A DNA stretch of 63,106 nucleotides, the filler included, from Reticulomyxa filosa (taxonomy: Eukaryota > Protista > Foraminifera), in the NCBI GenBank assembly GCA_000512085.1. It is 16 parts of 16 records of this genome, joined end to end, with 100 filler letters (N's around TTAATTAATTAA, not from the genome) between each part and the next. Parts side by side here need not be neighbours in the genome. Positions count along the whole stretch, not along the records: positions 30,264 to 43,288 come from ASPP01005298.1; 15 more parts are not named here. One strand, given 5' to 3'. The position numbers and the translations under genes are program-made. Numbering within the stretch: the first letter of the stretch is position 1; each line of letters begins with the position of its first letter. Positions 30,264 through 43,429 of the stretch are shown here, one piece after another. Below the pieces are notes generated by a model. The model ran no database searches. It was not told where the DNA came from and worked only from the letters and a program-made list of their open reading frames with translations.

Positions 30264-30361
30264 AAAAAAAATTAGGTCTAAATGTTGATTTTTTCATGGA
30301 GAAAATCAATTATCATTATAAGATATGTTTTATGCGTTCAGTTTTTTTTTGCAACCTACTG
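30264..30361. mobile_element. TIR-family end, adjoining the 3' end of the Gypsy integrase
   Basis: ...ATAAGATATGTTTTATGCGTTCAGTTTTTTTTTGCAACCTACTG|TA. Confidence 0.85.
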
Positions 30362-33295
30362 TAATAAAGGTGAAATTTTGTCCAGTGATTCCAATAATGT
30401 TCTTTTTGCTACTGTTGGAATTTAGTTTCTTCAGCTTTGACACATGCATAATTTTTTCAAATCCCTTGTCATTTTTTATTTTAAGATTTACTGGACTGGT
30501 GCGCTGAATGACGGCATAAGGTCCCAAATTTTGCATTAACTTTGCTTTATTACCAACTCTTTGATCTACAAACAATAATACTGAATCTCCAATTTCGAAA
30601 TTATCTTTATGTTTTTGTTTGTTTTCATATTTTATTCATTTTCTATTTAATTATCTTGTGCTCGCAACGTATCACTTCGCAACATTTGCAACTGCTTTTG
30701 CAAGGCGTTCTGGTACTCAAATATCGATTCATGTACATACTAATCTTTTTTTTCTAGCAATCTCAATTTAATGTCTGATATCAGTTGAAATTTTTGCCAT
30801 ACACCAATTCATGTGGACTTATCATAGTCATTTTGTTTGAAGTTATGTTGCATGATGTCACAATTGATGGCAAGAATGAATCCCAATAATCGCCGTTTGT
30901 GAAATCTAAATCGCGATCTACTGCAATGGTAACGAATGGTGCTGTGGATGAAAAATGTTGCAATTCGCCAATATTTTTCCAACGGACGATTTTGCAACTT
31001 GTCGTGTAAATCATGTTTTGATGTCATCCACCATTCCTGGCTAATATAGCCTTTCTTGAATAATCGCTGTCATTCGTTGTGTGCCTTGATGTTGAGCCAG
31101 TGCATGAGAATGAAAGTAATTAATTTTATCTTTGTGAAATTTTTTATTTTTATTTTTGATTTGAATAATATAGTCTTGGATAATGGATAATCTCTTGTCG
31201 TTTTGCTGTGCATTCAGTAAATTTTGTTTCTCGAACATTCCGTCATAATCACGAATCTCGCAGCTGGACGCAAATGCTTTTCTATTTGTTCTACCTTATC
31301 AATCATTTGATTATTGTTGTTGTTATGTGGTACCAACTTTTCCATGTTGTTTCGTTGAGATCTTGTCATTACCAACAACTTTTTGCTTAACTCCAACGAT
31401 TTTGGATGTTTCTACAAGAAATCTACGATAATATTTGGAAGGTTGCATGTGCATTAGTGAATCCAAGCTCATTCTGTTCCATTCATATAATCCTATTAGT
31501 GTAATGAAAGCGATTTTATGACAATCCTTTTCCCTAATATACATTTAAGTAATCGGATCTTAAGTCTAGTTTAGAAAAAATTCGTTTATGTGCTAATTTC
31601 TTCATCAGATCATTAATGTTTGTCAATAGCCATTGTTTCTTGTTGTTTACTGTATCTTTTAAATTCATTTCATTTATTCCCTTTGTCAACAGAAACATTT
31701 CGATTTTGAAGTTTTAAGCTAATATCTGTCGACTATTTACCTTTCCATGATATAGTACGCTTTTGTGGTTTCGTCATTATTTCTTAACTTTAAAACAAAA
31801 AATTTTTCTCTAGTTATAGTTTGTTTCATTGTATTTATTAATGCTATATCTATCAAGCACGTTCCAATTCTTTGAAGTTGTATCTCCGAAATGCATCTGA
31901 CTTGTAAAATTTTTGTTTCTAGATCTAATTTCTTCTTCTTATCGATATTATACGAATTCAAGGGTTTCATTGTTTCTTCCAATGTGATGGATTTCTATCT
32001 TATAACAACCTTCTCACGATACCACTCAAAGAGTCCAGCAACGCTTCCATTAATCTCTCGTCAGAAGGTTTCAACCTCTTTCTTGATTTGATATCGCATT
32101 CATAAGTTTAATCCAATTCTAATTTCAATGCAAACTTCTCTTGTCTCCAACGCAGCAAAATATCTACATATTCTTCACCAAGTCTTGTGGTAAACTGAAC
32201 TAAATCAGATTCTATATTTTACTTGATGTTTTCATCCAAACATCTTAAACATCAAATTAATCATTTCGTCAAATATCGTATGTTCTTCTGCATGTGCCAT
32301 TTCCTGCGCTTCAAGATACAAATACTATTACAACACACAACGCAAACAAAATTTATCATGTAATTGATATGTAGCTTTCCAAACCAAAAATTGTCGTTAG
32401 TAACGAGTAAAATCATTTCTATTTCCATCAAAAAGTTGTCGAAAGCGATTATGTGCATCCATTACCAACCTTAATGTATTATCGTTACCACATGCAATTT
32501 CCTGGTCTTCATTACTATTCATTGATCTGCCAATTAAGGTTTTTCACTTAATATTAGTATTCCATAAGGCGCATTAAGTTCCATACTTGAACTTACACCG
32601 ACATCCACTGCATGTTGATGTCTCATCAACGAAACCTTTTCTTTCAACGAATGCTCTAATTTTGTGACATGTTTTTGCAAAGTCGATAATTGCCTTCTCA
32701 ATGATATTTCCTCGACGATGTCAGCATTCAATACTGATACAAGATTCAAATTATCATTGACCTCGTTCTCCAAATTATTCACCTCCTGAGTCTCCATTAA
32801 CAGCCTCGTATTATCGTTTTCCACCTTGTTGCCATTTGCTTTCAATATTTTGCAATGTGCAAATAATCTCAATCTTGACTAGACCACCGATTCGTTATCC
32901 TTCACAACTTCTCCTAACTCAGCTAACTGTTGTCTCAAGGCTTCCTGACTCATAGCCATTATTTGTTCATTGGTGGATAACGTTGCATCATTATTCTGTG
33001 GTGCCGATGATTTTTTTTTTTTTGTTCGTTCGCTAAACAGTGGATGCCAAATGTAGGAAGATTGAGGTAACACCTTTTTATTGAATCTTTTATACTGTAT
33101 ATATTTTTTTAAAACTAACACATATTTCAAAAGGAAATTTCTTAAAATTTGCTAGTTTGAATTAATTCTCTTCATCCAACATATTTAAATTTTGATGAAA
33201 GATCTATAGTTCAAAGACGTTGATTGCTGCGATTAGATATTTGATTTGCTAATAAGATAACGAAAGTTTAAAAAATTCGAATTATTGTACCTGCA
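30362..33295 (-). mobile_element. Decayed Ty3/Gypsy LTR retrotransposon (LTR end, PBS, gag, RT and integrase remnants)
   Basis: RT fragment KIAFITLIGLYEWNRM; integrase FHSHALAQHQG...Y*PGM, PFVTIAVD, WDSFLP...SPHELVYG and GPY motif; RT-before-IN order; LTR end CTTCCTACA at 33052 followed by TT-TGGCATCCACTG. Outer LTR boundary at 33295 is tentative. Confidence 0.88.
33038..33049 (-). promoter_or_regulatory. Putative tRNA primer-binding site
   Basis: TGGCATCCACTG starts 2 nt after the LTR-terminal CA and is complementary to a tRNA ending ...GUGGAUGCCA. Confidence 0.7.
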
Positions 33296-33510
33296 TGTGA
33301 ACCGCAGTTTTTAGTTTTGTTCTCGCATCATCGTCTCACAATTTCAAAGTTTAATCAATTTTGATTTTGACAATAATCCATTGGAATAATTTCCAATCAA
33401 AATAAGGAGTGACACGACAAGAACAAAGAAAAACAAAAAAGAGATCCTCAAATGGTAGTTCAATGAAACTGTTTCGCTTTTCTCTTTTTGTTTTTTGTCT
33501 TTTACTTCTT

Positions 33511-34380
33511 TTAACGATATCTCCACAATTGTGTTCTTTGTCTTCGTTTCCAGTTGGATCGCACTGATGGTCTTTTTTTGTGTGCCAAATGACCTTTTCT
33601 GCGTAATCCTCTGTGCTTTCGTCCCGCAGATGTTAAACCACGGGCTTCTCTTCGTTTGTGTTGTGCACGACAGATCCAATTTATTTTTGGATCGGCTTGC
33701 ACTCGCTATTTTTAGCAGTATTTTTAAATGAGGACCACACCTTACAACTTTAGGAAAATATGCGAGTTTTCGTGCAATAAAAAAATTTTTTTGTCATAGA
33801 AATCAACTTTGTGTCTTGGATCAACCAATATGACTTCATACCACTTATATGAACCATCTTCTGTGACATGATAACTGTTTAATACACGCAAGTTCGCTGC
33901 TATTTTACCTACTCGCTCTTCTGCTATGCTTCGTAAGTTCTTCGTATTTTTCAATTGGTTGATACCCTAAAAATTATGTTGTGCTTTTTTTTCCCCTTTT
34001 GTACTACTGGTCTTTCTTACAACAAAACTTGGTTGGCTGGTTTTCCATAAACAACACCCTTGCGGTTAGGTCTACGCCGGCCACCTCTCTTCACTCGAAC
34101 ACGATACACAACAAATCCAGGAACTCGTTTGTATCCTAACATATGGGCTTTGTCTGGACGTGTCGGACGAGTAGTGCGATGGACTCTAGGCAATTGACGA
34201 TAGTTCCATGCTCGAATACGTTTCAAAAAACGCAACACATCACTTTGCTTTTTTTTCCACAGTTCACTGATATATTTATAGCCACCTGTTTGTTTGTCAC
34301 AAGTTTAAAGCAACCATACACTGTTTTCTTTCCTTTTCTCTTTTTCTTTTTTAATGCAATATCTCGTCTACTTAACCCAT
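33511..34380 (-). CDS. RPL15: 60S ribosomal protein L15 (eL15), 4 exons
   Basis: ATGG|intron|GT GGC TAT gives [21 protein letters not shown]...[14 protein letters not shown]...AEERVG...NLRVLNSY...[19 protein letters not shown]...LWRYR. Confidence 0.97.
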
Positions 34381-34521
34381 ATCTCTTTGAAAAACTTACA
34401 GATCAGGTTTTGATTGCACTGATATGAGTTCAAGTTAAAAAAATACTTGTTTTCTAGTTAAAGTTCCCACGCGGTAGAATTTTGTTTGCAACGACATAAG
34501 ATTTCATCGGTTTTAGCTGAA

Positions 34522-36690
34522 ATGGATTGGGTGCTAAGCGCGTTTCAATCTGTGGACAGATTGACAGTTATTTAATAGGAATTTTATCACGTGGAGTATT
34601 TTTAGTTCTTCGAGCACCTATCTACTTACTACTAGTTTCAACAAAAAGGACCCTTGCCGATTATGGATGCATCATCAGGGCCATCTTTTGAGCTTTTGGT
34701 TCAACCAAATGCCGTCTTTAAAGCAGTAGATCTTCCTCATGGACACTTACACACCCGGTACATAGGAGGAGGGGAGAAGGGGCGGCGTGTGAAACAAAAT
34801 GCAACAAACAAAAAGAAAAAAGCAGAAGATAATCCATCGATTGGACGAAATAATAACAATTCAACCTGAAAAATCTCCAAAACAAAAAGGAGAACAAGTC
34901 AATTGGAAATTAGAAGAAGTGTCAATTGCATCGTTACCAAACGTTTCCTGTCGAAGATGGATCCCCTCGAATAACGTAACAACGACAAAAGGAGCAAAAA
35001 ATCAATCAAACGTGTCAATTCTGCGTTATAACGTAAGTTTAATAGCCAAATAACATTACCATTGTTTGATGACCTGGCAAATCGAGTACACTCTACAGAA
35101 CAAATAAAAAAAGGACGAAGAATATCGTCAGCTCTGTTCGTCGCGAGATTGGATGCGAAATGAAACTGATATTTTGTTGAAATTGTGTGAAGAGTTTGAC
35201 TTACGTTGGGTCGTGATTGCGGACCGTTACAATGGACAATTGAGAGAATTGAACGAGCAGAAGGAAAGAAAAGAAAACGAACGAGAAAAGGAAGGAGGAG
35301 ACGATGATGGTGATGATACCAATGAGGATAACGATGATGATAGCGACGATGACGACAATAGTGACGATACAATAAACACGTTTGAAAGAGAAACCATAAA
35401 AAATAAAAAACAAAGCGCAAACAAAACACAGAAAATGCAATATGAATGAACCAGTGTGGAATCGGTCGAAGTCATTGGAGGATTTAAAAGAAAGATTTTA
35501 CTCTATCCAAAATGCTTTGTACAAACATCGAAAACTATCTTCACAAGGACAACAAGTGACTATTAAAAAAGAAGAGGACAACAATGTCGAGCACGATTCC
35601 AATGGTAATCTCACCTCCACTTCTACTTCCACTCTTTCTCAAAGCAATTCAGATCAAAGTGCTGTCTTTTTTGAATACAACCGAGAACGAGATCAACGGA
35701 GAAGACAAGAGTTGGAAAAAATACTCATGCGAAGCTATGAAGAGGTATGCATCATTTCTCTCACACTTTACTGTTCTCGTTGTATCTTTTTGTTTGCTCC
35801 ACATAAAGGAAATGGAATTATGCGATGCGATCGAGCATCAACGAAGAACGGAACTAAAGCTAAAACGGGAAATCGAGCAAACCAAAAAAAGGCATGACGA
35901 ACTGCTGGCACAAAAACAATGGATTGAAATGAGAGCAAATGATCCTAAAGTGAAAGCTGAATCGAATATTGGCTATGGAGGAATATTTGGCCAGAATATT
36001 GGATATGGTGTCATTGTCCAAGACAACACTAAGCCATCTGTTATATTCATATACATACATGTACACATACATATACGTACACACATATATGCCGTATTTG
36101 CTTGTTTTTTCGCACTTACTTTGCTTTTTCAATTACAGGTCGAATGCAATGGCGGTCCCTTGCATGATTTACCAAAAGGAGTTATTCCTACAGGTCCACA
36201 CTACGTCAAAAAATATTTAACGGCAACACACCTGGATGTAATGGACAAGAGAGTTTACACAGTTGAAATTGAAAATGAAAAATGTAATGTCAAATTTCCG
36301 TACAAAGAACCTAAATCAAGTAACAACTCTTCCTTTTCTCACAGCTCCACGCGAGAGACAAGTCCATCTCCTGACACCGTGGAAAATGATGACATTTCAA
36401 TGAAAGACAGAGACAAAGAGCGCTCTGCAGTTGAAGAAGAAAAGGACGAAAAGTTAGCCATCCCAGAGAGAATTGCGAAACATGTGCAAGAGCATTTGCT
36501 GAAATGGGACATTGTTCGAAAAGGCGAACTAACTCTCAACGGACCAGCCACATGTGTTACACACGCTATGTTTCACACTTTGAGAGGAGACTTGATTAAG
36601 TTTTATGCTTTGCAAGAAGCTTTAAAAAAACAAGAAGAATTGATAAAACAAAAGCTGCCTCCGAGTGTGTACAAACAACTGTTGAAGTAG
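34522..36690 (+). CDS. DMAP1: DNA methyltransferase 1-associated protein / SWC4 (SANT domain), multi-exon; start uncertain
   Basis: DEEYRQLCSSRDWMRNETDILLKLCEEFDLRWVVIADRY...KSLEDLKERFY...FEYNRERDQRRRQELE match DMAP1/Swc4 motifs; intron 35380-35431 restores the frame. Confidence 0.8.
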
Positions 36691-36833
36691 GTGCTATCCA
36701 AGGCTTTCTATTGTGCTATCATTTACGTTTTAAACTTTTCAATTCCATTTTTACACATTCTTTAAAAAGTTTTCACCTTCACACCACTATTACAGAAAAA
36801 AAACAAATTTCTCACTTTTATCAATTGTTTTTC

Positions 36834-38125
36834 CTAATCTGTTGCTTGTTCTTCCATATTTATGGATCTGGGTGTCTCACTTGAAACGTGCATAGGTTCT
36901 GGTTGCAATGCACTTGATGATCCCAATAGAGAAGTGTTTTTTGGTTTGTTGTCCGTGGTTGTCTCTTCATCTTCTTTGGGAGCAAGGTCAATTTCAATAG
37001 CTGATTTGATGGATCCACGTAACACAATTTTTTGCAGTATATAATGACATGCACAACATAACTTTTCATATGCCTTTTCGTGTGATTTGGCCATCAGTAC
37101 AATAGCCAAAGAATTGCTGATAAAGTCTAGTACGGTCAAAACGGCCATGCTTGTTGATACCAATATCAGGAATACTGATAACATAAAACATATTGAGCAC
37201 GATACCAACACACCACATTTGATCATTAAACGCGAAAGGTTCCTCTCACTCTTGTTAAGACCAACCCTTGAAACAAATAAACAAGCAGTTGTCAAAAGGC
37301 GGATGTTTCAAAAGAAAACAAAAAAGGGGATAATAACTCTCTGGCGTGTGCAATCAAAGCGAGCAAAGGCCGAATAAACAAACTCAGTGACATTAGTTGA
37401 ACCAAAAATTCTAATAACAGCATTACAAATAAAAATGCCTGATCGATTGGACGGTAATGATAGTTACAAAATCCCAAGTCTCCAACATACCACAGCATTA
37501 GCAATCTATCAAAGCTCCAAAACAAGGCAATCACAACCCATAAAAAACCTGCAACGTATACTACCCAAAAACTTAATACGTTAGCGTTTTCGAATTGCGA
37601 ACCTGAATAAGCGCTCTTTTGTGATTGAATATGTTCAAACACAAACAAAATCACTTTGTTTGAGTTATTTCAGGCACACAAAAATTTTTTTCATACTTTT
37701 ATTCGAAGAATAAATAGTGAGAACAGGAATACTTTACCCAGAATGAAACTCAGTTGTACCATTAGCAAATAGCCATCGCATCTGTTGTTTTTATGTAACT
37801 CAAATTGTTTAAAATCGCACTAGGATCAAGCATAGATTTTTTTCCTCTTCTCCTACGTTAGTTTTTTTCTTGCAACTCCGGTGACGTTCAACATGTAAGC
37901 AGTAGTCCATGACAGATATGCGATAAGCAAACAATAAGTCAGATACTTGGTCCAGTAAGAATAATTTACGAGTGCTTTGGGAGGCTGCTTAGAAGCCAAG
38001 GTTGTTGACTTTTGGCACTCGAAGTAACAATGCCAAATAATCAAAACGACGAAAAAAGAGAGAGCAATCGCCGCAATTACTATGGCAAAATCAGCATAAA
38101 AGCTTTCTTGGGTTGCGTCAACCAT
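36834..38125 (-). CDS. Putative 7TM GPCR-like protein
   Basis: About seven hydrophobic helices over four exons, last helix LDFISNSLAIVLM, then KLCCACH and a Ser/Thr-rich tail. Confidence 0.6.
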
Positions 38126-38333
38126 CTCATGTGAAAAGACAAGTAGTTATTTTCTAAAAAAGTGTCCCAGAGGTTGGACCACAATATTCTAAGGAGATCT
38201 TGTTCAAGTCGTCTCAATAAATTTCCTGAAGAAAACTAATTATTAATTTCAAGCTGATAACAAGCAAAAATACCATTTTTTTTAAATTTAAAAGGTGGAC
38301 CCAAAAAGTAAAAGAAAGAAACAAAGTATTTGA

Positions 38334-40026
38334 ATGTATGCACGTGGTGCAAGGCGTATTCAGGAGAAAGCGCGGAAGTCTTCATTATATTCTTGCCTTC
38401 GTTGTAATGTACCCTCAGTGAAGACGTTGTTATGCTTTCTAGCAGTACTGTTGGTTGTATTTTATTCGACCCTGGCAGTGGCAAATAAATGGTGTGATTA
38501 CCACACCAATTTGCTGCTGGGGCAATCGAAACAATCACTAGTCAATTTAATCTCGCAGACCCAAGTGAATGGAGAAGAAGCGGTAATGAACTTCCAACAA
38601 ACAGTAGAAAGTTTAAAACGAGAAAATGAGATATTGAAATCAACGAATAAAGACCTTCAAGCAAAAATTTTGGCATTGGAACAAGAAAAAAAGACTTCCG
38701 GAGGAGTAACGAAACAGTCACCAAACGACGAAACGCCATATCTTCGAAATCAGGTGACAATTGAAACAGCACCAAAAGGGACGCCTGTAGTGATATTTAC
38801 ATATAATCGAGCGGCATATCTCAAGCAAACATTGGCAAGTGTGCTTCTGTTGAGTTTGAATTGGAAGAATTGTTTGTCGAGTTTGAGAGCAATGGTTCCA
38901 AACATACTAAACACTTGCGTGTAGGTATACTCCACGTGATCGCTTTCCATTGTTTATATCCCAAGATGGATTTGACGACGGTGTGACAAAGACCATCAAT
39001 GATTTTGTTGCACAAAAGAGTGTTTTTCATTTGGGCTTTGATTACAGCAAAGTTATTTTTTAAAAAACAAAAAGGGAGCAATTAAGAGGAAAAAAAAAAA
39101 AAGGATCAAATATACAGACAGACAAACGAAGACATAAAGGATTCGAAGAGCAACGCTGGTTGGCATATCATAAAATCTCGGCCCATTACAAATGGCTATT
39201 TACGAAAATGTTTGACGAATTACAATACAAACAGTTAATAATTTTGGAAGATGATATGCAGATATCTCCCGATTTTTTCCGTTATTTTGAGCAACTGACG
39301 CCATTGCTCGTCAACGACCCCACTGTGTTATGCATCAGTGCGTGGAATGACAATGGACAAGCTTCTTTTGTTCAAAGTCCGACCGCGCTCTATCGTACTG
39401 ACGTCTTCCCCGGATTGGGGTGGATGTTTACCAATAAATTATGGCAGGAATTCAAATCCAACTGGCCATTGGCGTATGTCTTCGGTTTTTGTGTCCTTAC
39501 TTTGTCTTCCTTCTAAACGCTGATTACATACCTTGCAATATGCAGATTTTGGGACGATTGGCTGCGAGAAGAAAAGCAACGGAAAAACCGATCGTGCATT
39601 CGTCCAGAGATAAATCGCGTGTACACTTTTGGGGAACATGGAAGTAGTGAAGGACTATTCTTTCAAAAGTACTTGAAATCGATTCATTTGAACAAAGAAG
39701 ACATTAATTGGTCAGCACAGAATATCGACTATTTGTATCACAACAATTACGATAACTGGTTAAAAAGTATTTTGACGTCTGCAAACGTCATTGATATGAA
39801 ACAATTGAGGCAATTAAAAACTTTTTCTTTTTCTTCTACCGAATACTTAATTTGGTATGAGCATATACAACAATTCGCCACGTTTGCCCAAGAAATTGGT
39901 TTAATGAGTGACGAGAAATCTGGAAAAGCAAGAACTTCTTACAATGGCATTGTAACCGTCCGTTATCATGGACACAGAGTCCACTTTGCACATAAAAAGC
40001 TTTCAGCATTTTTTTTTCCATCTTAA
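38334..40026 (+). CDS. MGAT1: Alpha-1,3-mannosyl-glycoprotein beta-1,2-N-acetylglucosaminyltransferase (GnT-I, GT13)
   Basis: Type II anchor and coiled-coil stem; VIFTYNR, SQDG, YHKISAHYKW, IILEDD..ISPDFF.YF, CISAWNDNG, RTDVFPGLGWM, FWDDWLR, CIRPEI.R..TFGEHGSS. Confidence 0.93.
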
Positions 40027-42632
40027 TTCAACTTCAATGTCTCTTGAATGCTTTATTTGATGCAAATTTCGATGATAGAAAAACAATTCAACATCACGAC
40101 CAAAAAGCTACTTTTTTAACTTCATTTCACTTATCTTCAAGCAAATATCTTTATTTAAGATAAAATTTTCCTAGTTAATTTATTGTAATATCTACAAAAT
40201 GAAACATAAGTCGATCATACAGAAATCAAAATCTTTTTAAAATATTCAATACAAGTTATGTCTATTCAATAGCAAATGTAAACACGGCATTATAATACAT
40301 AATCCAAAGTCATGATACACTTATTGAAAATTTGTTAACAAAAAAGCACATAACAATCTTCAGAAAAAAAACACGTTAGTAACAAATTGACAAACGAGGC
40401 AATTTTAAAGCTTGTGATGATAAATAATGAGTAGAATTTCTGATAGCTTGTACAATTATTATATAAAAGAAGCTAGTCAAATGATAGATCGGCAAATGAT
40501 TGCAATACAAAAATTTGTCTAGATTTTACAATGCTTTCAGTTTTTTCAAAAAGAGAACAAGCTTTGAATAAAGAAGGAGTATATAAAAAGATGATAAATT
40601 CGCTGAATTTTTGGTAATTCATTCGTATTTGTCATTCTGACTGTCTCCAAGTTTCACTACTCATCATTATTTTAAAAAAGAAATAAATTTTTATTTGACA
40701 AAAAAAAACTTATTATACAATAAATGCATTCATTTGCTTATTTTTGCTTTTACACTCCCAACAAATTAAATTTGTACAAATATTTGTTCTAGTTCAAAAA
40801 TTTATTTTGGAAGCAGTTAAATAGATGTGTGAGTTTGCTTTGGTGTATATTTCAAGCAAATAGTCGTAACGTATTTGCAAAAGACCGTCGAACCAACAAA
40901 AAATCTTAGACTGTGACAAGACTTGAAAACGCTATCCGTAAATTAGGCAATTAGGAAGAGACGAGTAAACCAATCAAATTTTGATCTTTTTTGACTGTAT
41001 TGAGTTTTTTTTACGTAATCAATGTATAGCGAAATTTGCAAGCCAGATTTCACTTTGTGATGTTGTGTGCGAACAACTTACAATCCTAAATTTACATTTT
41101 TTATCATCATCAACGTTAAGCTAGACGACACAACAATAAAAAGTTTACTAGTTCTGGACCCCAAGTACTGTATATTTGCTTTTGGATTACTTACTCTTAT
41201 TTTGATTGCCATGCAGTGACATTATGGGTATGGATCATCTTTGATTTATTTTCCACAGTTTCTCACCACAGTGATTATTACTTTCATTGGATGTTGTCTC
41301 CTGAATATCATGATTATCATCACTTAGTATTCAATCAGAACTTTGAAGTTGTACCAAATAAATGATCCATTATACCAAGCACATCAAAGTTTCAGAAATT
41401 GTATCAATATCAATCGCATAAAAATTTTTTAACTACTGATTGTTTTGAGATAAAAAAATCAACTTGATCGCAACACATGGAAGGAAAATCAAAAATGAAT
41501 AAATGATTGTGTAATTTTGCTTTATTATGTTTTAATTAAAGTGTTTAAAAATATACTGACAGCTCTGTAATGCCAAATGTTATGTCTATATTTGAACATT
41601 TTTCAATAAGATCAAATTATAAAAGCTATCTTTACTTTTTGTTATTGTCATTAATATTAGTTGATGAATTAAAAAATGAGTTTTGTAAAAGAAATTTTGA
41701 AAATGATTCGTTAAATATGTTAATTTTTTTAAACATTAAAATATTTGTCAAAATTTTTATACAAAAAAACATTGACAAAGAAATGTTATATCTCTTGGCC
41801 TACTGTTTTTTATGAAAATATTTTTTTTCAAGAAAAATTAGGTGGTACATCACAAGTCCTTAGTTTTATTGTAGAAATAAGTTAAAACTAACACAAACAA
41901 ATTTGGGAACAAAATTGTTCAAATACTCTTTTTCTAAAACTAGTAGTGTACATCATTGGTTTGTTCATTTCAAGAGAAAAATTAATATTGTATTTCAAAG
42001 CAATACAACATATCTTTTCGTTAATAGTGAGCATCTTCAATATTTTTGTGATATTTTGCAATGAATAACACTTTCCTTGAAAAATGAAATATTTTTTAAA
42101 TAAATTTGTCAAATTGAAATATCAACTTGTGCATGCTACAAAAGTACTATTTTTTTGTTTATGATAAAAAAGTCTACATTTGCTAAATCTTGTATTATTT
42201 TCTATTTTATTAAATGATTTGCAATTAGTAAATGAAATTTATTTTTGAATGATTAATCTTAACAAAACAGTACAAGTTTTATTTAAAAAAAATTGTTAAT
42301 TATTGAAAACAATTTCTTTACGACAGTGGTCTTTGAAAAAAGTTGAGTATGAATAATAAACTCTTTCAAAACATGACAATAAAGTTTTTCTTTTGCGAAG
42401 ACGACTTGACCAATAAGACATTATACTGGACTTTATTCTTTGAAAACGACACGACAATGATTTGGACGACCATTTGCACCATACCAGCAATTACAACAGA
42501 TCAACACCGATCATCAATTATTGTTAATAGAACACTCGAAGCGACGACGAAACGAATTATTGCAATGGACACAACGACAAGGAAAAAACGAAGAAAGATT
42601 TGAATGATGGAAATGTGTGGTGACTTTTTTTT

Positions 42633-43046
42633 CTGCTGGAGACTCATAGTGTATTTGGATGACACCTTGTGTCAATACCAAACACACTACCTCTCGACAG
42701 CAGGGTCGGGAGAATCGTAGTATAAAATGACTACTTCTTACGGACTTATTGGCCGGAGACTAGTAAACAAATTTGAATATAATATAATTTAATTACCTCT
42801 CAACGGCATTGTCCGAAGATTAGTATCATTTATACTACCTCTCAACCGACACTTGATTAACTTGCGCTGGAGATTAAGTAATGTATGGCATGCAATTGTG
42901 CGGCCTGACAGTGAGACTCACAGTGATTTTCACTACATCTTAAACGGCCCTTTTATTATTTTTTTAAATTTATTATTAATGTGGTCGGAGACTCATACTG
43001 TATGTATTATCATCAATTTGCATCCATCACATTACCCATCCGCGCC
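42633..43046 (+). repeat. Tandem array of structurally conserved hairpins (putative structured RNA or ssDNA elements)
   Basis: Alternating motifs GGAGA(C/A)T(C/A)RTAG and CTACCTCTCRAC that base-pair, with different basal and apical stems in each unit (see findings). Confidence 0.75.
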
Positions 43047-43429
43047 TTTTGTCACTATCTTCCACTTCCGCATCCATATCAATCCACATTTCTTCTATCG
43101 TCATCACATCACTATGCGCCAAAACATTTCGATGATAACAACGATGACTATAACAATGATGATGATTATGATCATTATTATTGCGACAGGAACACATTGC
43201 GAACAGGAACGAGAATACCAACAATTGCAACATTTGATATCGACTCTGGTTTATCTATGTTTATATATGTTTATTTAGTTATTTATTTNNNNNNNNNNNN
43301 NNNNNNNNNNNNNNNNNNNNNNNNNNNNNNNNTTAATTAATTAANNNNNNNNNNNNNNNNNNNNNNNNNNNNNNNNNNNNNNNNNNNNATATATATATAT
43401 ATACATATACATATATGCGATATTTCTAG

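Follow-up and report, generated by a model that had tools for sequence, protein, structure and literature searches.

The hairpin array described here lies at positions 42633-43046 of the window, the whole 63,106-nucleotide stretch of Reticulomyxa filosa DNA that was analysed, in contig ASPP01005298.1 (assembly GCA_000512085.1), and carries no annotation. The contig is 13,025 bp long and is contained as a whole record (window positions 30264-43288), and the array is located 240 nt from its end and 565 nt beyond the last called gene. Six genes were called on the contig (a 220-aa ORF, RPL15e, a SANT/DAMP1-like gene, a 207-aa ORF, GnT-I and a 119-aa ORF), an exon of GnT-I being 98% identical to ETO30811.1, a protein that maps to no other contig, and the contig is ordinary nuclear DNA. 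The GnT-I intron (Table 1) served as the local reference for splice sites in R. filosa. The G+C content of the array is 35%, compared to 23-30% in the 2.3 kb between GnT-I and the array, and on the left side an 8-T run (42625-42632) stops directly at the first hairpin. The array has no long ORF with a family match, protein searches gave no match for the ORF spanning the third hairpin (H3, see below) or for one GnT-I exon ORF, and two ORFs of the window had no exact protein on record. A tRNA scan of the 13-kb contig found zero tRNA, and no tRNA or rRNA genes were seen near the array.

At the contig end opposite the array, minus-strand ORFs of a called gene that we take to resemble the C-terminal part of a Ty3/gypsy-type integrase (pattern GPY..V......HVS.LK) are probably a decayed retroelement; Pfam gave no match for the one ORF tested from this region. 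This is the sole mobile remnant on the contig, approximately 12 kb from the array, and no Rep, transposase or integrase of an ssDNA-type element was found among the called genes and ORFs of the 13 kb. Elsewhere on the contig, the ORF that codes for the N-terminal part of GnT-I contains a stable hairpin of about 65-100 nt, which ranks second in structure among the 120-nt windows (z -5.2); folded as 171 nt it reaches only z -2.1, and it is without the core motif of the array. A TG/TA-rich, microsatellite-like palindrome had sub-threshold matches to mir-297, mir-1277 and mir-3149, which are low-complexity chance, as they score 27 bits where the gathering score is 90.

Table 1. Features of the array and its contig, in window positions (CM, covariance model score).
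Feature	Position	Strand	Description	Scores
Integrase-like ORFs (presumed)	30330-31014	-
TG/TA-rich palindrome	36042-36090	-
Hairpin in GnT-I ORF	38446-38545	+
GnT-I intron	39474-39545	+	72 nt, GTATGT...TGCAG, from protein-to-DNA alignment
Left border	42620-42632		GTGAC (42620-42624) can pair with GTCAC 43051-43055, outermost helix of the + fold
H1	42633-42703		self-contained 71-nt hairpin, about 29 bp	CM 59.3 bits
H2	42704-42851		148-nt rod, inverted repeat I1; arms U2 and U4
U2	42704-42746		arm of H2
U3	42751-42808		56-58 nt, nested at the tip of H2	CM 54.3 bits; z -2.9 (+), -3.3 (-)
U4	42810-42851		arm of H2
H3	42864-43046		degenerate 183-nt outer hairpin, inverted repeat I3 (18 nt, 78%)
U6	42901-42950		nested within H3	CM 35.3 bits; z -2.5 (+), -1.5 (-)
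Spacer	42951-42982		T/A-rich, in the loop of H3: TTTTATTATTTTTTTAAATTTATTATTAATGT
Orphan 5' arm	42983-43016		GGTCG GAGA CTCA TACTGTATG...	1 mismatch to 5' core

The array is a genuine and statistically solid cluster of related hairpins. All motifs quoted in the earlier note were found where it had placed them, and both motif enrichment and folding against shuffles bear out its view of a non-random hairpin cluster with a kept asymmetric core. With up to three mismatches, the 5' core GGAGACTCATAGTG occurs four times in the contig, always on the plus strand and always within the array, against 0.44 occurrences expected by shuffling (0/100 shuffles reached four), and the 3' core ACTACCTCTCRA, with up to two mismatches, occurs four times in the array with one stray match. 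The 441-nt block folds with z = -7.7 on plus and minus alike and the best two hairpins reach -6.5 to -7, confirming that both strands fold better than shuffled controls, while the 311 nt upstream of the array are no better than shuffles (z = +1.1). When the contig was scanned in 216 windows of 120 nt, the start of the array gave the most negative value (z = -5.7). A covariance model built from the units recovered six of them at 35-59 bits on the plus strand, compared to 6-10 bits for the same units read on the minus strand, and found no further copy in the 13 kb, the next match scoring 12.5 bits. This match (41930-42004) was considered as a seventh degenerate unit and rejected, as it does not fold (z about 0). 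The contig has no other mixed-composition inverted repeat, nor palindromes comparable to the array. TRF detected no tandem repeat in the array, which agrees with the suggestion that it is not a simple head-to-tail repeat, and long terminal inverted or direct repeats flanking it did not rise above shuffles. The linkers between the units are 0-12 nt.

The array had been described as about six or seven hairpins standing side by side, but refolding does not bear this out: the predicted layout is that of three composite hairpins, H1, H2 and H3, with nested units. As a family, the array comprises five paralogous hairpin modules (H1, H2, U3, H3 and U6) and one half-unit. H1 is the first unit of the earlier note, with the structure as it was written there (CTGCTG / GAGA / CTCA / TAGTGT..ACACTA / CC / TCTC / GA / CAGCAG). 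Its z is -6.5 (plus) and -7.0 (minus) as RNA and -5.1 and -5.5 as ssDNA, and its one A.C mismatch on the plus strand is a G.U pair on the minus strand.

U2 and U4 had been regarded as hairpins of their own. On their own they are weak (z -2.5 and -1.6), with G.G and C.C mismatches in their basal stems, whereas together they form the rod H2, in which both arms of U2 find their partners in U4, 5' with 3' and 3' with 5'. The rod has about 35 bp, all Watson-Crick on the plus strand and free of mismatches and wobbles, with small bulges remaining, and its base reads GTCGG / GAGA / ATCG / TAGTAT..ATACTA / CC / TCTC / AA / CCGAC. Its energy is -48.3 kcal/mol (z -7.0) on the plus strand and -51.4 (z -6.6) on the minus strand, against a sum of -28.5 kcal/mol for U2, U3 and U4 folded alone (-11.5, -11.2 and -5.8 kcal/mol). 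The loops of U2 and U4 are complementary as well, and thus the rod is what is kept. U3, at the tip, reads GGCCG / GAGA / CTAG / TAA..TTA / CC / TCTC / AA / CGGC and is AT-rich in its upper part. At the top of H2, 42727-42746 can pair with 42810-42828 in a second, mirrored foot (ACTAC-T-TCTT-A-CGGAC / GTCCG-AAGA-TT-AGTA), so that the rod looks alike from both ends.

H3 is degenerate (z -2.4 on plus, -3.0 on minus). Its 5' arm (42864-42895) reads GCGC-T-GGA-GATTAA-GTAATGTATGGCATGCAA and its 3' arm (43018-43046) TTGCATCCATCACATTAC-CCA-TCC-GCGC, the GAGA/TCTC helix being eroded to GGA/TCC. What had been taken as one combined fifth and sixth unit is two things, the 5' arm of H3 and the nested U6 (GGCC / [TGACAGT] / GAGA / CTCA / CAGTGA-TTT-TCACTA / CA / TCTT / AAAC / GGCC). 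The proposed seventh hairpin dissolves in the same region: its 3' arm belongs to H3, 43018-43035 fitting 42878-42895 far better than the orphan arm, and its 5' arm, with a core near the consensus, is left without a matching 3' arm. Three of the 5' arms carry GACTCAT or GACTCAC (42640-42648, 42914-42922 and 42989-42997), one base from the AP-1/GCN4 site TGACTCA, and in U6 this string forms the palindrome TGAGACTCA; as a shared feature it was rejected, because it is missing in the other units.

What the units share is the foot, in which a variable basal helix of 4-6 bp is followed by a purine bulge, GAGA/TCTC, a loop of about 4x2 nt and TAGT/ACTA. The basal helices are CTGCTG/CAGCAG, GTCGG/CCGAC, GCCG/CGGC, GGCC/GGCC and GCGC/GCGC. 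The bulge in the 3' strand has 1-3 nt, usually 2 (GA, A, AA, AA or AAA(C), and none in H3), and the loop above the GAGA helix sets 4 nt on the 5' side opposite 2 nt. The 4-bp helix GAGA/TCTC (or TCTT) is kept in five of the six units, with 87.5% of cells paired, and the bulge and the loop hold their position and orientation, again in 5/6. A comparison of all arms revealed a mosaic: the foot was side-specific, 5' arms resembling 5' arms and 3' arms resembling 3' arms, whereas the upper stem of each 5' arm came nearest to the reverse complement of the 3' arm in its own unit, and the two arms of a unit were more alike in their upper stems than the units were among themselves. Had the units been duplicated and then drifted neutrally, same-side arms would be the closest relatives over their whole length. 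With a side-specific foot and unit-specific upper stems, some process must maintain the complementarity within a unit and spare the bulge and the loop, although part of the complementarity is inherited, as the A.C mismatch is common to H1 and H3. The earlier description of basal stems that differ but still pair, apical stems that vary and a core that is kept is upheld.

In the alignable core, 6 of the 16 pairs change on both sides, a number reached by 28/500 shuffles, and the covariation score of the core was reached by 12/500. Four of the five outer pairs of the basal helix change on both sides yet pair, one position having three different Watson-Crick pairs. In register the core is 82% paired, versus 30-49% with the partners slid, and RNAalifold keeps the basal and GAGA helices. 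As seen in 5-6 linked paralogues of one locus, the core covariation is real but modest, and suggestive. The covariation claimed earlier is modest when set against the shuffles. Selection on structure, which had been proposed from the same pattern, agrees with arms that are kept complementary, but palindrome dynamics at the DNA level would do the same.

Folding quality is about the same for either strand and for RNA or DNA parameters. G-U pairs had been thought to favour the plus strand slightly; we observed the opposite lean, with 0/0/1 wobble pairs on plus and 2/4/8 on minus in the minimum-free-energy folds, and with seven transitions that wobble on minus and one on plus in the arm-against-arm alignment. 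This bias leans to the minus strand weakly, since several of the transitions are shared by descent or lie in a loop. On the plus strand the unpaired bases are 3' of the 4-bp helix on each strand. The foot of the minus strand is basal helix / YY / GAGA / G / GUAGU...ACUAU / GAG / UCUC / basal helix, with the unpaired bases 5' of the 4-bp helix.

The hairpin cluster with its kept asymmetric foot is undescribed. Rfam 15 gave no match in the array at E<=10, neither with the whole contig nor with 541 nt alone, and the earlier impression that this is not a described Rfam family stands. A resemblance to Y RNA/sbRNA and let-7 (GUCCGAAG.. and GAGGUAG strings) was dropped, as Rfam gave no match. Hammerhead, hairpin-ribozyme, K-turn, SECIS and IRE cores are absent from the array by sequence reading. 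Pattern scans gave 0 loci in prokaryote genomes, seven in metagenome contigs and five in viral contigs, all of them single, non-hairpin chance matches of at most 18.8 bits with the covariance model, and nothing relevant was found in the literature on small RNAs, hairpins or repeats of R. filosa or foraminifera. A MITE was rejected because the upper stems are unit-specific and because direct target-site duplications are missing, the sequences just beyond the core being inverted repeats (CTGCTG/CAGCAG, GTCGG/CCGAC, GCCG/CGGC); the 13 kb of this contig hold no further copy of the units.

Our preferred reading, to which we give somewhat less than even confidence, is that the array may be a transcribed, structured noncoding hairpin RNA with the foot as a repeated recognition or processing site. 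The modules would have arisen by local duplication, and the array would be transcribed as one noncoding RNA. In the RNA, the foot would consist of a basal helix, a purine bulge, a near-invariant GAGA/UCUC helix, a loop of about 4x2 nt and UAGU/ACUA, above which the upper stem would be free in sequence and length provided that pairing holds. The foot may be the recognition or cleavage site of one structure-specific RNA-binding protein or endonuclease, and the transcript could serve as a polycistronic precursor, with small RNAs cut from its hairpins, or as a platform for multivalent binding. The anatomy, its departure from chance, the side-specific base and the paired stems particular to each unit are shown, whereas transcription, the strand (with its weak minus lean), the protein partner and any cleavage are steps that we infer. 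Several observations point in this direction. Motif enrichment and folding go far beyond shuffles and are confined to the array, and all units have one orientation and one asymmetry, as the covariance scores on the two strands indicate. Basal pairs change on both sides and stay paired, and unit-specific upper stems combined with a side-specific foot are unlike the outcome of duplication with neutral drift. Mere equalising of the arms would erase the bulge and loop, which nevertheless persist in near-perfect helices. The short linkers, the raised G+C content beside intergenic DNA of 23-26% G+C and the lack of a long ORF with a family match, of tandem repeats and of flanking terminal repeats are in line with the same reading. 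Against it, the covariation is modest and comes from linked paralogues of a single locus, the fold is equally good on both strands and as DNA, and the inherited A.C mismatch makes the complementarity in part a matter of descent. The Watson-Crick pairing throughout H2, including the loops of U2 and U4, has the look of a recent inverted duplication or of arm homogenisation, and the nesting, the orphan arm and the eroded H3 resemble rearrangement and decay of DNA.

These objections lead to a cluster of palindromes at the DNA level without RNA function, in which a hairpin-prone seed would have been copied locally in direct and inverted orientation, and the likeness of the arms would be due to intrastrand template switching (quasi-palindrome correction) or to their recent origin. 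We hold this to be somewhat unlikely in itself, and it ranks nearly as likely as the transcribed hairpin RNA. The R. filosa assembly is very fragmented and repeat-rich. The absence of wobbles and mismatches in H2, where U2 is nearly the reverse complement of U4 with the loops included, would be expected from such copying, as would nested units, an orphan arm and a decayed H3. Equal folding of both strands and of ssDNA, the single locus close to a contig end, and the mismatch common to H1 and H3, which means that both arms were inherited together, also fit. However, neither the bulge nor the 4x2 loop should survive homogenisation, and both are kept in most of the units, and the basal helix outside the imperfections still has paired double changes. 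The want of comparable palindromes elsewhere in the contig likewise speaks against a purely DNA-level origin.

A further alternative, which we consider improbable, is that a mobile or replicating element uses the hairpins as ssDNA sites recognised by structure, an HUH or tyrosine enzyme reading one strand, as in IS200/IS605 ends, REP/BIME clusters, integron attC sites and parvoviral hairpin telomeres. Like attC and REP/BIME, the array has imperfect palindromes with a conserved base, fixed extrahelical bases marking one strand, a central part varying in length and sequence, and clustered copies; a conserved asymmetric base below a free upper stem is the logic of attC and REP sites. Small palindromes nested in a larger one, with an asymmetric stem bubble that is kept, recall parvoviral ends and foldback elements. 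The likeness to attC or REP hairpins put forward in the earlier note is retained in so far as ssDNA folding is significant and the base asymmetric, but the boxes, the alternating orientation and the enzyme gene are missing. R. filosa has been reported to carry Rep-like genes (bioRxiv 10.1101/2022.12.15.520654), and the array lies at the end of a contig, a place where assemblies are often interrupted by repeats, both of which would suit such sites. In contrast, no Rep, transposase or integrase is encoded in the 13 kb, the only mobile remnant being at the far end. Integron attC was rejected, as there is no RYYYAAC/GTTRRRY pair, there are no cassettes between the units and the contig is eukaryotic and nuclear; the closest attC-like box, TCTCAAC (6/7) in the 3' arm, has its AA bulged and not paired with GTT. 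REP/BIME and IS200/IS605 were rejected as well, since all six units score on the plus strand only, unlike the alternating orientation of BIMEs, and neither such a transposase gene nor an integrase or RAYT is nearby. Unlike parvoviral telomeres, the array has three structures in a row, is cellular, intergenic and not terminal, and is without viral or transposon genes. The lack of target-site duplications, interiors unlike those of copies of one miniature transposon, and prokaryotic, viral and metagenomic scans with single chance matches are further points against recognition sites of this kind.

Still less probable is a miRNA-like or mirtron-like cluster on the minus strand, where U[U/C]GAGAGGUAGU is common to the 5' arms before they diverge, as in a seed family, and where the unpaired bases give G^GUAGU...UGAG^, that is, hairpin ends with GU..AG and a 3-nt 3' overhang. 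H1 and H2 are precursor-like in size (71 and 148 nt) and stability, the minus-strand arms share their 5' part and diverge in their 3' part, and the wobble pairs lean to the minus strand. As in clusters of miRNA or hairpin RNA, a single intergenic locus holds closely packed, related hairpins of 50-180 nt, with arms that keep the same small bulges in every paralogue and apical parts that vary. The conserved part is, however, at the very base, with 0-12-nt linkers and neither a lower stem nor a single-stranded flank, and not in a 21-nt duplex that sits one turn higher than a lower stem; the units also abut or nest. U3 and U6 fall short of the required length, the sequences that would act as 5' splice sites (GUAGU/GUAAU) have U at +5 in contrast to GTATGT in the GnT-I intron, and no let-7 or other Rfam miRNA model matches at E<=10 despite the GAGGUAG string.

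Weakest is the idea of bulge-helix-bulge (BHB) substrates of a tRNA-splicing endonuclease, a precursor that would be cut at each foot, which is very improbable: the likeness noted earlier holds for the topology, judged from general pre-tRNA anatomy, as the plus strand has two outer helices, a 4-bp central helix kept in 5/6 units and unpaired bases 3' of it on opposite strands (hBHBh'), but a 4x2 loop with a bulge of 1-3 nt, mostly 2, takes the place of the two 3-nt bulges, tRNA and rRNA genes are missing from the surroundings, and the wobble bias leans weakly to the minus strand, where the unpaired bases are 5' of the helix. Readings other than those listed here share a similarly small probability.

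It is also conceivable, though we regard it as distinctly unlikely, that the array represents an undescribed class of foraminiferan RNA module, in which a structure-specific enzyme would cut or bind a fixed asymmetric foot of basal helix, 2-nt bulge, 4-bp helix and 4x2 loop, and hairpins of any sequence, even nested ones, could be released from one polycistronic transcript. Processing of this kind would be eukaryotic, independent of tRNA and related to the BHB or RNase III type. To our knowledge, almost nothing is known on noncoding RNA in Rhizaria. In case the array is a cluster of DNA palindromes only, it would be ordinary, yet it would show how nested quasi-palindromes originate in a very repeat-rich genome. 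In case it is transcribed and processed at the foot, it would be the first structured-RNA family of foraminifera and a compact natural case of recognition by shape and not by sequence.
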